From: Schizochytrium sp. TIO01
Taxonomy: Eukaryota > Protista > Bigyra: Labyrinthulomycetes
Assembly: GCA_004764695.1 (NCBI GenBank)
Contig: SMSO01000037.1
Location: 4,936,747 to 5,000,746, forward strand
Direction of reading: 5' to 3'
DNA length: 64,000 nucleotides
Shown here: piece by piece, positions 47,057-52,140 of the stretch
Numbering within the stretch: position 1 is the first letter of the stretch
How the letters are laid out: each line of letters starts with the position of its first letter
Position numbers and translations under genes: made by a program
Notes under the pieces: generated by a model
Databases searched by the model: none
What the model was told of the DNA's origin: nothing
Seen by the model: the letters and a program-made list of their open reading frames with translations, nothing else

Positions 47057-50000
47057 ATGTCAGACCACCCAAGAGTTGTTGCCGCTCTTGAACAGCTTCA
47101 GGATGGCGCTACAACATTGGAGTAAGTTAACATGGTACTCTTGGTCGCTCGGTCGCTTGCTTGCTTGCTTTCTTGCTTTATTTGCACGGTGTTGCTTTTG
47201 TTGTTATTGTTTTGCAAGTTTATGCAATGGCTGGTTTGTTTGTTTGTTTGTTTGATGGATGGATGGATGAATGGATAAGTTGTCTGTTTGAGTGAGTATA
47301 TATCCATCGAACAAAGAGCAAAATGACAACACAACAAAGATAAATGCTGAAAGCCAACCTAGATCACTCACGCCCATGCATGCATGCGTGCATCTATTGT
47401 AATATGTAACGTGTAATGTATTTCTTGCCATCATGCAATCAAATCGACAGTCTTGGAGACAACGTGATCGGCGACGAGGGCGCCAAGGCAGTGGCTGCGG
47501 CGCTGAAAGAGAACCGGTCGCTGACAATACTTTTGTAAGTTGTCTTAGCAACATCACAGCTCCTGGGCTTGTTTGTACATGATGCTTGGTTTGTTGTTTG
47601 GTGGGTGGGTCGGTGTTGTTTTGCAAGTTTATACAATCGCTTGTTTGTTTGATGAATGGATGAGTTGTCTGTTTGAGTGAGTATACATCCTTCGAACAAA
47701 GAGCAAAATGACAACACAACAAAGATAAATGCTAAAAGCCAACCTAGATCACTCACGTCCATGCATGCATGCGTGCATCTATTGTAATATGTAACGTGTA
47801 ATGTATTGCTTGCCATCATTCAATCAAATCGACAGTCTTGTATTCAACCAGATCGGCGACGAGGGTGCCAAGGCAGTGGCTGCTGCGCTGGATGAAAATC
47901 ATGTTCTTCAGGAAATAATGTGAGTTTGTACAAATTAGAGAAATCTAATCGAATGCTTGAGTGATATGAAATTAAGCTTCGAAATTATTCAAACTAACAA
48001 ATCAGAGTTGTATATCCGGGTAGTCTTAATAATGATATCTCTCAAGACGTGAAAGATCATATTGGTGACCGCTTAAAGCTGGCCAACGATATAGTTGACG
48101 AGTTCTCAAGGTCTGCATTAAATGCTTTTTCAAAAGATGAAAAGGTACGATGGGGCCGAGCGAAGTTGATGGTAGTTGGAAAGGGAGGCGCTGGTAAAAC
48201 ATCAACTATTCGCACTCTACTCGGTCAATCATTCGTAGCGGAGCATGACTCAACTATTGGTGTTGACCTTAAGGTGATTCGCACGAAGGACTGGAAAGAG
48301 GACCCAGTGGGCATTCACTCTGCTGATCTCAACGATGCTCTTGTAAAAAGCCAGATCCGTAAAGATCGAAAGAGCATTCTACACAAAAGTATTCGCAAAT
48401 CACTAGCCAGTCTTTCTGGACCTCGGATGGATGAAACCTTGAAACCTGAGCTCAAGGTCGAGCGATGGGAGGTGGCAAGAGTTTTTAGGGCTGATGTGAA
48501 ATTCCAATTTGAAGAGGCTGGACGTACAAAAGTAGAGGAAGATGTCAGTTTCTCCATTTGGGATTACGGTGGGCAGGAGGTTTTCTACGCTTTGCATCAC
48601 CTTTTCCTAACTAATTACGGGGTGTATGTGGTCGTTTTCGATATGCGAGAAGTGATTGGAAAAGATAATTTCCAGGACTGTTCTGACTATGCGTTAATGG
48701 AGGACAGCGAGACGGCACTAAACACGATTCAATTCTGGCTAGACTCGATACGCTTACATGCGAATGGAGCCAATGTTATTCTTGTGGGTACATATCTCGA
48801 CGCTCTGCAGGATACTAAGGAAGATCTAAATCTCGTTGACACTGAGTTGGGAGTGCTTCTAGCTCAGGCCAAAGGCCTCCATCATGAGAGAAACAAAACA
48901 GAGAAACTTGAGTTTTACCCTCTGGACAACACCGAACGGAGGGACCCATTTCGTTGTGAGCTTCTTCGTGAGATTCTCATGACTACAGCTGCCAAGGAGA
49001 AATATGTGAAGAAGGAGGTACCATTGCGATGGTCTCTCTGCTTGGATCGTATGTTTATGCTCAACAGAGACTACATCGAGCTTGATACTGTGTATGAGCT
49101 TGCAACAAGTTCCTGTGGGATTTCAAAAGATGACGCTACGGAGATGTTGAAGTTCATGCACGAGCTGGGCGTAATTGTGCATCTCACCTCTACGCCTGTT
49201 CTGGCAAACTATGTGATCCTGCAACCTCAATGGCTGCTGGACAACTTGTCACGAGTAATTTGTGATCCAATGCATATGAAGGTGCATGTGAAAAAAATGA
49301 AAGAAGCAGTTACAGAGGTTGAGATAACAACAGATTGGTATGCTGACTTAGAGACTTGGAAGAAACGCGGTGTTGCAAGTCAATTATTTCTGTCAATGTT
49401 ATGGGGTCAACCTTTTTTTGTGAAGTACTTTTCTGAACTCATGACAGAAATGCTTCTGGCTAGCAGAAGCCCATGGATAGGAGACTTGGACGCAGAGGGA
49501 GCTTTGTTAATTCCCAGTTTACTAGAGAATATCTCTGAGGATGGGCTCGATGATTTCTTTTCGGAATTTGAAGGCGCCGCTTTAGTGTATATCGAGTTTG
49601 ACTTTTTCCCCAAAGGAGTATTTCAACGCTTCGTTGCGAGTATGGTGTCAAATTTCCCTGCAGGGCTCGTTGAGGTTCAGCAGGTGTACGCAAATGCGGC
49701 AAGCATCATATTTGATGGCACTTCTGTCCTCCTGGTTCGGGATGATACTCGACGTCGTATTATCATGTATTTAGAAAATGATGAAGAAGACGAAAGCAGC
49801 GATTTACAGAGACCAATAACAGACATTGTACAACTACTGCACACTCAACTGCAATCAATAGATGAAGCTTTCATGAAACAGAAATTGAATCCAAGGTTGT
49901 TTTTGAGCTGTGACGGTACGACAAATGATGAAAGTTGTGCCTCTATTAGTGTTCTGGCAAAGGCACGGCGTGGTAAGGTCTTGTCGGTTGGGCGCAAAAA

Positions 50001-50562
50001 AAGGTTGAGGCTGTCATCCTTTCGGTTGTTTTTTGCCAACAGAGATGAGGCCGAAGGGTTGGAATCGAAGGTAACAGTACGACGAGAGAAGAAGTATGAC
50101 GTCTTTTTGTCACACGCTTGGGGCAAAGATAAGAAAGTGCATAGGCTTGTATGCCGTGTAAGTGATGAGTTGCAGAACAATCATGGTATATCATGTTGGC
50201 TCGATCGGAACGAGGTGCAGCACGGCGAGATTACTCGTATAATGACTCAGGGTATCGATGATTCCAAAGTGGGCGTTGTCTTTGTTACACAGGAATACAT
50301 GGAGAAGGTAAACTCTGACCCTGCGAGGGAAGATAACTGTCGTTATGAGTTTGAGTACCTGGTAAAGAGAAAGTCCCGAGTTCGCATGATTCCGGTTGTA
50401 CTTGAGCAAGCTATGACTGGTACAAGCAAGTGGGAAGGCGTTTTTGGCGGTTCGTGGGGAATTAATCCTCTTTATGTTGACATGACAAGTGGTGGATCTC
50501 CAAGTGAGGTTAAGGAGCTCCACGATATGGTTCGTCACGTTCTTAGTGAAATTGAGAAATAA
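47057..50562 (+). CDS. LRR-Roc-COR-TIR (ROCO family) protein, 929 aa; exons 47057-47121, 47451-47534, 47836-47919, 48006-50562
   Basis: All three introns are GT(A/G)AGT...CAG, phase 2, and the spliced frame is open. Exons 2 and 3 each encode one 28-aa RI-type LRR. Roc motifs GKGGAGKTS, STIG, WDYGGQEVFY, LVGTYLD; COR motifs LKFMHELGVIVH, ILQPQWL, FFPKGVFQRF; TIR_2 YDVFLSHAWG...WLD...GIDDS...NCRYEF. Confidence 0.92.
47122..47835 (+). repeat. Duplicated intron-LRR exon units (~385-bp period); homologous unit at 51764-52140
   Basis: Introns share TTGTCTGTTTGAGTGAGTATA, GAGCAAAATGACAACACAACAAA, AAAGCCAACCTAGATCACTCACG, CATGCATGCATGCGTGCATCT and CAATCAAATCGACAG. Confidence 0.93.
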
Positions 50563-51294
50563 CGATTATCCTAAGTTTGAGCAATTGATGTTTCATATAT
50601 GTTCTTGCACAACACTGTTTCTCATTAGCAGATGGACTCCGCTTCCAAAAATAAAACATTCTACTGCTATTGTGTGAGGCTTTGCTCCAATTGAACATGG
50701 GGTTTGTTTTCTTTTTAAAATTTTATCAAGTAACTTCATTCAATTTTTCTTTTTACTCTTATAATAGGTCTAATTGTCATTTTGAGAGCAACGATACCCT
50801 TTTTAGTGGTAAATCTACTACGAGAAACAGTGTAAATTCTTTATATCTTAACCTATAGTACTTTACGAGCTAGTGAAAACTAGGCCAATTGATGTTGGCA
50901 CTACAAACCTGAACCCATTTATCAACTCACACATATACCAGGGCCACTCCTTTCTTATTTCGTGTCTACGTCTCTATACTCATATTATCCACGCTTCTCT
51001 TCATCAGACCCACTGATGAAGGCTAGATTTCAACTATGTCATGTATATTATCAAACTCGATTTTCAAAATGTAATTGAACTGAAAGATCTGCCAACCCTT
51101 TCGACTGTTTGACCAAGGAAGAGAGAGACAGTGCTGAAGGCGATTCGTCTCGAGACGCTTGTATATGAATACGGTGTGGTCTTGTCAGGATATACCTGGA
51201 AGTGATGCGCAATTCAAAGGAAGGTTTTTTGTTCAATAGGACAAAGTTGAGGAGTGTCTTGCTTCAGGTTAAAGGTCTAGCCTTTGTAAGTAAT

Positions 51295-51510
51295 TATTGA
51301 AGTAATATATAGCTACTGCCTAACTTCATCTCACCTCACCTAGCCTAGCTCTTCTATCTGACACCTTCTGTGCGTTGGACTGACATGACACATACATTCT
51401 GCCTGTATCCAGACCCAAAACCCCAACAATTCATATATCATCCTCTTTCTCTTTCTCCTGAGTTTAACATCCTTGTCAGCACGCTTCACAGCACAAGCTA
51501 CTCTGCAATA
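51295..51510 (+). mobile_element. Solo LTR (same copia family), without matching TSD
   Basis: TATTGAAGTAATATATAGC...CTACTCTGCAATA; flanks GTAAT/GTTTG. Confidence 0.88.
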
Positions 51511-51679
51511 GTTTGGTAACTAAGCACATTAAATTGCCCTCTGCTTTTCGATAAAATTGAAAGAGAAAACCTGGTTTGAAGGAGGAAACAGTGCAATAAG
51601 GGATTGCTCAAAGAATTGCGAATTAACTTATTTTGTAACTAGCCCCTTTCATGGCTAAAAATGGCAATCAAATTAACAG

Positions 51680-51763
51680 ACTTCGGGATAATAAAATCTG
51701 CGACGAGGGCGCCAAGGCAGTGGCTGCAGCGTTGAAAGAGAACCGGTCGCTGATATCACTCAA
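51680..51763 (+). other. 84-nt phase-2 LRR exon cassette A downstream of the ROCO stop
   Basis: CAG|A CTT CGG GAT AAT AAA ATC TGC GAC GAG GGC GCC AAG...CTC AA|GTAAGT = LRDNKICDEGAKAVAAALKENRSLISL. Confidence 0.9.
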
Positions 51764-52056
51764 GTAAGTTGTCTAAGCAATACCACAGCTCATGGGCTTG
51801 TGTGTACATGATGCTTGCTTCGTTGGTTGTTATTTTGGTCGGTGTCGCTTTGCAAGTTTGTGCGATCAGTTATTTGTTTGATGGATGGATAAGTTGTCTG
51901 TTTGAGTGAGTATACATCCATGGAACATGGAGCAAAAATGACAACACAACAAAAATAAATGCTGAAAGCCAACCTAGATCACTCACGTCCATGCATGCAT
52001 GCGTGCATCTAATGCACTGAAATGTATTGGTTGCCATCATTCAATCAAATCGACAG

Positions 52057-52140
52057 TCTTTCTTGGAACGGTATCGGCGACGAGGGCGCCAAGGCAGTGG
52101 CTGCAGCGCTGAAAGAGAACCGGTCGCTGACATCACTCAA
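52057..52140 (+). other. 84-nt phase-2 LRR exon cassette B
   Basis: CGACAG|T CTT TCT TGG AAC GGT ATC GGC...CTC AA|GTAAGT = LSWNGIGDEGAKAVAAALKENRSLTSL. Confidence 0.9.

Follow-up and report, generated by a model that had tools for sequence, protein, structure and literature searches.

One-repeat exon cassettes and a genome-wide family of leucine-rich-repeat genes in Schizochytrium sp. TIO01

A stretch of 64,000 nucleotides (nt) from Schizochytrium sp. TIO01 (assembly GCA_004764695.1, contig SMSO01000037.1, positions 4,936,747 to 5,000,746 of the forward strand), here called the window, contains four very short exons that each encode one leucine-rich repeat (LRR). Two of these cassettes lie in a gene for an LRR-Roc-COR-TIR protein of the ROCO type (gene 1), and two, named A and B, lie beyond its stop codon. 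What purpose do the two outer cassettes serve? A preliminary description of the locus had taken them as extra modules feeding the ROCO-TIR gene, within a cassette-based system of receptor diversification. Our analysis leads to another assignment for A and B. We consider it probable that the window holds two neighbouring genes which draw on a shared pool of cassettes, that the second gene is a remnant, and that exchange in the germline together with selection diversifies the repeats of proteins serving as sensors.

The four cassette exons and the genes around them

All four cassette exons are exactly 84 nt long, with AG directly before and GT directly after each of them (Table 1). Each is open in one frame only, starting at base 2, and both of its ends are therefore in phase 2. 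One cassette thus comprises 27 whole codons plus a split codon, and encodes one 28-residue LRR of the RI type. Each of the four matches the Pfam family LRR_6 (PF13516) by itself, with E-values from 4.7e-06 to 0.03. The cut-off is exceeded by one of them (26.7 bits), and the other three reach 14.7–21.1 bits, which we attribute to the profile spanning the exon junction. A 29-nt core of the cassette occurs four times in the window and was absent from shuffled sequences, and an 80-nt intron block is present three times at 96–100% identity. No minus-strand cassettes were found in the window. The preliminary description was accurate on these points: the four symmetric exons with one 28-residue repeat each were recovered by the frame check and the LRR_6 matches, the flanking introns do share highly similar blocks, and A and B do stand with intact splice sites past the stop codon of gene 1, at 1.1 and 1.5 kb. 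It had also proposed that cassettes can be swapped safely, and since all exons are symmetric, any subset can indeed be skipped or exchanged in frame.

Joining exon 1, the two upstream cassettes and the large exon of gene 1 gives a single open frame of 924 codons, including the stop. In the large exon, a Roc domain (PF08477, 67.3 bits; cut-off 27) is directly followed by COR (PF16095, COR-A, 46.8 bits; cut-off 35.3; residues 341–420 of the large exon), and a TIR domain is detected by two profiles (PF13676, TIR_2, 48.9 bits, cut-off 28; PF01582, 29.1 bits, cut-off 21.3). Structure matches of this exon include the Roc domain of LRRK2 (E from 2e-12 to 4e-09) and bacterial Roco structures. Read from the sequence, the P-loop GxxxxGK[ST] is intact (GKGGAGKTS, around 48180–48206), which makes the Roc domain of gene 1 a candidate GTP binder. 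The TIR part matches a bacterial TIR structure (7uxr, E = 0.002); a candidate NADase-type glutamate in ..NCRYEFEYL.. was picked out by eye only, the 7uxr alignment ending before that helix.

The remainder of gene 1 is built from elements that recur elsewhere in the genome, where we designate contigs by numbers with the prefix C (the window lies on C36) and sampled loci by numbers with the prefix L. The region upstream of exon 1 is 97–99% identical to regions upstream of family genes at C36:2.318M, C30:4.7k, C13:4.003M and C24:4.068M, and exon 1 modules homologous to that of gene 1 are present at 45 loci or more, L032 and L035 included. Bases 47250–47450 of intron 1 share 97% identity with family introns of other contigs; the intron between the two cassettes reaches 96.7% identity to introns of L002 and L003, against only 85% to the window's own intron A. 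The diverged 3' half of the second cassette, together with the short intron behind it, is also found in the paralogs on C35, C30, C13, C32 and C24; we take this cassette to be an adaptor, and gene 1 therefore has a single generic cassette. Two minor features of the 5' region were recorded. Intron 1 of family genes (window 47140–47280, L002, L032) contains (GCTT)n and (GTTT)n microsatellites whose length differs strongly from copy to copy, and two adjacent copies of an 82-nt repeat, 77% identical, lie just upstream of the promoter module of gene 1, at 45969–46133.

We then turn to cassettes A and B. The sequence that follows cassette B aligns over its full length to the sequence with which long arrays on C36 and C35 continue beyond their last cassette. 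This shared 3' sequence consists of a terminal intron and then a phase-2 exon for a tail of 105–111 amino acids, and the tail of the window is 63–66% identical in protein sequence to the tails after long arrays. Searching with the DNA of the tail exon gave at least 40 copies at 85–100% identity (40 of 93 candidates scored), and a protein search gave roughly 70 or more. Open reading frames (ORFs) of the MMETSP transcriptomes are 79–86% identical to the tail of the window. One ORF, P0124, runs from a retained family intron through the last cassette and the predicted split codon into the tail, and the more distant P0125 and P0128 are RI-type LRR proteins with the same tail at their end. Apart from the tail, no large ORF and no Pfam domain was found downstream of cassette B. 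The tail itself matched no Pfam family and had no usable neighbour in the ESM Atlas; it falls into only three representative clusters among 1.84 billion proteins, and its AlphaFold model is helical with modest confidence (mean pLDDT 70, pTM 0.33).

Upstream of cassette A, family homology ends 16 nt before the acceptor. Of the spacer between the genes, only 51391–51510 aligns to the paralog on C24 (L035), where a complete pair is found: exon 1, three cassettes and a Roc-COR-TIR exon on the gene 1 side, followed by a second gene with promoter, exon 1, two cassettes, terminal intron and tail. About 1.6 kb of C24, holding the second promoter and exon 1, has no counterpart in the window. The same pairing of a ROCO-TIR gene with an LRR-tail gene behind it occurs at C35, C13 and C7, with long arrays. 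The conserved terminal intron with its in-phase tail, the junction seen in P0124 and the intact gene pair on C24 together point to a separate gene next to gene 1, truncated at its 5' end and belonging to the LRR-tail family (gene 2), of which A and B are the LRR exons. The possibility that A and B begin a further ROCO gene downstream was rejected, as no Roc exon follows.

How does this compare with the claim that A and B are extra cassettes outside the ROCO-TIR gene? As spare donors, recombined into the ROCO-TIR gene by way of the homologous introns, they would be comparable to orphan LRR exons in Ectocarpus or to the donor cassettes of variable lymphocyte receptor (VLR) genes. They have intact AG and GT sites and the cassette phase of gene 1, they begin 1.1 kb past its stop codon, and gene 2 has no recognisable promoter or exon 1, all of which would suit donors; cassettes also seem to exchange patches genome-wide, so that A and B could donate like any other copy. 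Against this claim stand the family terminal intron and in-frame tail exon that follow them, the last-cassette-to-tail junction of P0124, and the two-gene arrangement that is intact on C24 and accompanied by long arrays on C35, C13 and C7. In addition, the gene 1 unit (47451–47835) shares 95–96% identity with units of other contigs, against only 85% with unit A, 4 kb away. We judge a donor role improbable and retain the assignment of A and B to gene 2.

Table 1. Features of the window, in window coordinates.
Feature	Position	Strand	Remarks
5' module of gene 1 (promoter/5' untranslated region)	46840..47056	+	similarity to upstream regions of family genes
Exon 1 of gene 1	47057..47121	+	ATG, 65 nt, ends in phase 2
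Intron 1 of gene 1	47122..47450	+	3' half is family intron
Generic LRR cassette exon	47451..47534	+	84 nt, phase 2/2; LRR_6 match
Family intron	47535..47835	+	301 nt, modal length
Adaptor cassette exon	47836..47919	+	last LRR exon of all ROCO-type members, ends ..DENHVLQEI
Short intron 3	47920..48023	+	specific to ROCO type, conserved in paralogs
Large exon, Roc GTPase + COR + TIR + stop codon	48024..50564	+	Pfam
Spacer between genes	50565..51679	+	promoter, exon 1 and intron 1 of gene 2 missing here
Cassette A	51680..51763	+	first LRR exon of putative truncated LRR-tail gene
Intron A, diverged copy of family intron	51764..52056	+	best match 88–91% among sampled loci L002–L035
Cassette B	52057..52140	+	last LRR exon of putative LRR-tail gene; LRR_6 E = 4.7e-06
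Terminal intron of LRR-tail genes	52141..52436	+	full-length alignment to L034, L032; L035 at 89%
Tail exon, 105 amino acids + stop	52437..52755	+	in phase 2 with cassette B
18S-5.8S-28S ribosomal RNA genes	56495..62023	+	Rfam SSU 1653 bits, 5.8S 144 bits, LSU 2990 bits
412-bp tandem repeat	63015..64000	+	Tandem Repeats Finder, 2.4 copies, 85% identity; downstream of 28S

Family anatomy and hypervariable positions

We define the cassette unit as 385 bp, made up of an 84-nt LRR exon and an intron of ~301 nt. In the window's own 64-Mb genome, a 31-nt scaffold pattern allowing up to 3 mismatches had 1,046 copies, against 0 for the reversed control. The full unit gave at least 394 matches at 91–100% identity on many contigs, in tandem arrays of period 385. 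Thus, the genome-wide search for the exon and intron unit, which the preliminary description had proposed, returned at least 1,046 cassettes and not just a few other copies.

Genes of the family share a common 5' module (promoter and 65-nt exon 1) and end in one of two 3' modules. The first is the helical tail of ~105–111 amino acids, present in about 70 or more genes, many of which are paired with a 5S ribosomal RNA (rRNA) gene and lie upstream of a subtelomeric 18S gene. The second, present in about 14 genes, is the adaptor cassette with the Roc-COR-TIR exon; arrays of this ROCO type end in the conserved adaptor cassette and its short private intron. Among paralogs whose Roc-COR-TIR exons are 77–91% identical, the number of cassettes in front of these exons ranges from 2 in gene 1, the shortest member, and 3 on C24 to ~10 on C32, ~13 on C30 and C13 and ~17 on C35. 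Close paralogs of the Roc-COR-TIR exon in the genome comprise 13 intact copies and 1 broken copy. In the broken copy, after a 13-cassette array on C13 (G000:C13:4008544-4011107), the frame is interrupted by in-frame TGA and TAA stops; this is a recent break, its near-identical duplicate on C30 being intact. The proposed cassette receptor system is thus upheld in its symmetric one-LRR exons, its homologous introns and the varying cassette counts of its paralogs, and not in the use of A and B as spares for the ROCO-TIR gene.

Are these units coding sequence? In the sampled loci, a length of exactly 84 nt was found for 185 of the 186 exons that lie between family introns, whereas the modal intron length of 301 nt is shared by only 64 of 121. 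Every one of 149 unique copies has the AG and GT flanks and is free of in-frame stops; given their base composition, the variable codons alone should have produced about 25 stops. Freedom from stops, a constant exon length and intact splice sites are coding constraints, which argues that the units are exons and not satellite. In annotation, ~0.4 Mb of coding cassettes would be overlooked or concealed by ORF tracks and repeat maskers.

Divergence was calculated from selected loci, which contain some 150 of the ~1,046 cassettes. In pairwise comparison, copies differ on average by 4.1% across their introns and by 4.0% across the exon scaffold, and by 60% at 12 variable nucleotides. Within the scaffold, third codon positions diverge by 3.9% and first and second positions by 4.1%. 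Amino-acid entropy is ~3.2 bits at LRR positions 2, 3 and 5, and the split codon 28 is variable too; elsewhere it is 0.1–0.5 bits, except for 0.7–1.2 bits at positions 8, 15 and 22. The variable residues are the x positions of the LxxLxLxxNxI strand, the predicted ligand-facing concave face. As this strand spans the exon junction, each binding strand is built from two adjacent exons. The residues found there are mostly polar, charged or aromatic (S, E, G, R, Q, D, Y, N, K, W), and hydrophobics (LIVMAPFC) account for 2–8%. The variable sites assort almost independently, with linkage only between the adjacent codons 2 and 3, and each gene would in effect be a natural combinatorial library on a fixed scaffold.

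Two further sites are of note. Codon 8 (exon offsets 22–24) is dimorphic, being TCA (Ser) in 75 copies and GAC (Asp) in 69; none of the three bases is shared by the two states, and intermediates are almost absent. The synonymous third base of Leu27, beside codon 28, is also highly variable, which fits old diversity protected in a small patch while the rest was homogenised.

A shared cassette pool and how it may be diversified

If cassettes are exchanged, where do they come from? Intron divergence is 3.5% within arrays against 4.2% between arrays, and most nearest neighbours of an intron lie in other arrays. For 23 of 33 ROCO-type introns, the nearest foreign relative sits in a tail-type array. 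By these sequence comparisons, ROCO-type and tail-type genes share one cassette pool, so that the ROCO-TIR genes draw on the same supply as the tail-type genes. We saw no sign of preferential local exchange, since the gene 1 unit is closer to units on other contigs than to unit A. Local duplication within the window was likewise rejected as the origin of the units, the nearest relatives of the gene 1 unit being on other contigs.

More direct information came from four pairs of segmentally duplicated arrays. In three of the four, all variable codons agree. In the remaining pair, C10 and C35 (99.3% identical), codon 8 is swapped completely between GAC and TCA twice, and one contiguous block of 4 nt differs at codons 2–3, with unchanged flanks; all three differences fall exactly at variable positions. 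This pattern is as expected of conversion tracts copied from a cassette that differs only at the variable sites, and we infer gene conversion from it.

We propose the following model. Diversity would arise in the germline. Unequal crossing-over between near-identical units would change the number of cassettes, and gene conversion among cassettes throughout the genome would homogenise introns and scaffold while reshuffling the few variable codons. Selection would keep the concave-face residues 28, 2, 3 and 5 highly diverse. The proteins would then act as sensors of ligands, and the ROCO-TIR members would couple ligand binding to a GTPase switch and a TIR effector. The persistent mirusviruses hosted by this organism are an obvious candidate source of such ligands, and the family may have an immune role.

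Several observations weigh against this model or against parts of the gene assignment. The ORF P0124 matches this genome at only 84–90% identity, so that it comes from another strain or is a chimeric assembly, and its upstream intron is still retained. No RNA evidence was found for this locus itself, the nearest transcript ORFs being the 79–86% identical ones cited above. From an in-frame ATG at 51651 the frame stays open across the acceptor into cassette A, and gene 2 may thus still be expressed from this codon. Gene 1, with one generic cassette, may be a degenerate member of the family. Purifying selection on the scaffold is not visible by codon position, as positions 1 and 2 diverge like position 3 and like the introns, and constraint on the scaffold shows only as absent stops, fixed length and intact splice sites. 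Gene conversion is deduced from one array pair only, and a targeted mutational process may act at the variable codons.

Could variation arise within a clone instead? Programmed gene conversion at chromosome ends, or combinatorial exon skipping, would make cells differ in their receptors. The symmetry of the exons, any subset of which can be left out or exchanged in frame, would permit this, many arrays are subtelomeric, and patches that look like conversion are present. Alternative splicing of brown-algal ROCO LRR exons has also been reported (Front Plant Sci 2024, PMC11378527). Recently duplicated arrays, which in three of the four pairs carry the same variable codons throughout, argue against very fast turnover. 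We find such somatic or clonal variability unlikely. In its strongest form, chromosome-end arrays diversified during clonal growth or by exon skipping would provide a cell-to-cell, anticipatory repertoire of LRR sensors with ROCO-TIR proteins as the signalling arm; a unicellular stramenopile would then have an adaptive-like immune strategy with a physical tie to the ribosomal DNA (rDNA) units, and we regard this as a long shot. Germline exchange with selection remains the reading that we prefer.

Chromosome ends and other LRR systems

The window holds a complete rRNA unit that points toward the end of the contig, with its 18S gene 3.7 kb past the tail exon. Contig C36 has its right end 17.6 kb beyond the end of the window, and the outward orientation of the rRNA unit together with the tandem repeat behind it places the cassettes ~30 kb from a chromosome end. 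Rfam found no 5S rRNA gene in the window. Elsewhere in the genome, many family loci have a divergently oriented 5S gene ~0.5 kb upstream of exon 1, as in C13:22162-22280(-) with exon 1 at C13:22698-22822(+). From its position upstream of many exon 1 modules, it seems that the 5S gene is copied together with the LRR gene as a unit.

This arrangement recalls the LORE-TEARS repeats described at chromosome ends of Aurantiochytrium limacinum, whose genome is similar in size to that of the window (about 62–64 Mb). There, Group 0 consists of ~385 bp repeats between 5S and 18S, and Group 1 of ~406 bp repeats just downstream of 28S (Collier et al. preprint, 10.1101/2023.06.15.545109). They were said to lack database similarity, and a part in the maintenance of chromosome ends was proposed (10.1101/2023.06.15.545109). 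A ~385 bp tandem unit upstream of a subtelomeric 18S gene matches Group 0 in size and, as far as the 18S gene is concerned, in position, and the 412-bp repeat of the window resembles Group 1, both being repeats of ~406–412 bp after 28S. Unlike published Group 0, the unit described here is an LRR exon with its intron inside genes, and hundreds of copies lie away from contig ends. Our literature search found no paper linking LORE-TEARS repeats to LRRs. If the likeness holds, the repeats published as 'spacers' for every chromosome end of a model thraustochytrid could be re-read as exons and introns of ~100 variable-LRR genes. The converse, that the 385-bp units are non-coding subtelomeric spacers for chromosome-end or rDNA maintenance and their LRR likeness a relic, would agree with the ~385 bp Group 0 repeats between 5S and 18S without GenBank similarity (10.1101/2023.06.15.545109) and with introns and scaffold homogenised equally at ~4% as in a satellite, but is highly improbable given the coding constraints described above (no stops, and fixed exon length and intact splice sites beside varying intron length), the LRR_6 match of every window cassette, the ATG exon and in-phase 3' exons that bracket the arrays, the spliced transcript ORF, and the many arrays far from contig ends and fused to Roc-COR-TIR exons.

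Judged by analogy, the nearest precedent for the family is found in brown algae. The ROCO LRR-GTPases of Ectocarpus have one 24-residue LRR per 72-nt exon and are exon-shuffled (Zambounis et al. 2012, PMC3341825), with positive selection on the shuffled repeats' concave face (PMC3341825). Both systems are found in stramenopiles and have one LRR per exon of a length that is a multiple of three, LRRs fused to Roc-COR, repeat numbers that vary among paralogs, and variable concave-face residues. In contrast to the 72-nt exon and 24-residue repeat of Ectocarpus, the family described here uses an 84-nt exon and a 28-residue repeat of the RI type, and its exon and intron unit is homogenised to ~96% identity over about 1,000 copies. 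It also has a TIR domain after COR, and most of its cassettes serve genes for LRR proteins with a helical tail, linked to 5S/18S rDNA at chromosome ends. Orphan or intronic LRR exons, some of them antisense, occur in Ectocarpus; none was seen in the window, where the apparent spares belong, on our reading, to the neighbouring gene. The exon-per-repeat receptor design of brown algae would thus extend to a unicellular heterotrophic stramenopile with a different type of repeat. Its signature is much sharper than the brown-algal one, with four hypervariable residues in a unit otherwise ~96% homogenised, introns included.

A second comparison is with jawless vertebrates. In lamprey and hagfish, VLR genes are put together somatically, and the cassettes used for this do not serve as exons of functional genes. 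Like them, the present family consists of LRR modules with diversity on the concave beta-sheet and apparent gene-conversion-like copying between cassettes. Unlike there, each cassette here is part of a germline gene and carries splice sites of its own, and these germline genes are complete and can be spliced.

How old is the family? The closest database relatives of the large exon are LRR-Roc-COR-TIR proteins of the thraustochytrid Hondaea, at 44–46% identity. In Hondaea fermentalgiana, P0003 and P0005 are 44–45% identical over the Roc-COR-TIR part. Both carry near-identical N-terminal 28-residue repeats that vary at the same four positions, and a diverged last repeat before Roc. Compared at the protein level, the Hondaea scaffold consensus differs (..GAKALADALAKNSSLQTL against ..GAKAVAAALKENRSLTSL), and a scaffold specific to each species is as expected from concerted evolution within each species. 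Variation at the same four positions on a scaffold of its own indicates long-term concerted evolution with the hypervariable sites maintained, rather than a recent burst, as far as these protein comparisons reach.

At locus L031 (G000:C36:1558-2064), three more divergent RI-type LRRs are encoded by single 84-nt exons flanked by AG and GT, with introns of ~120–135 nt. Since they share the exon size and not the intron size of the family, the design of one LRR per 84-nt exon may predate the 385-bp unit. Elsewhere in the window, a tRNA match (Rfam, 47 bits) lies at 36883–36949 on the minus strand, inside a putative copia element.

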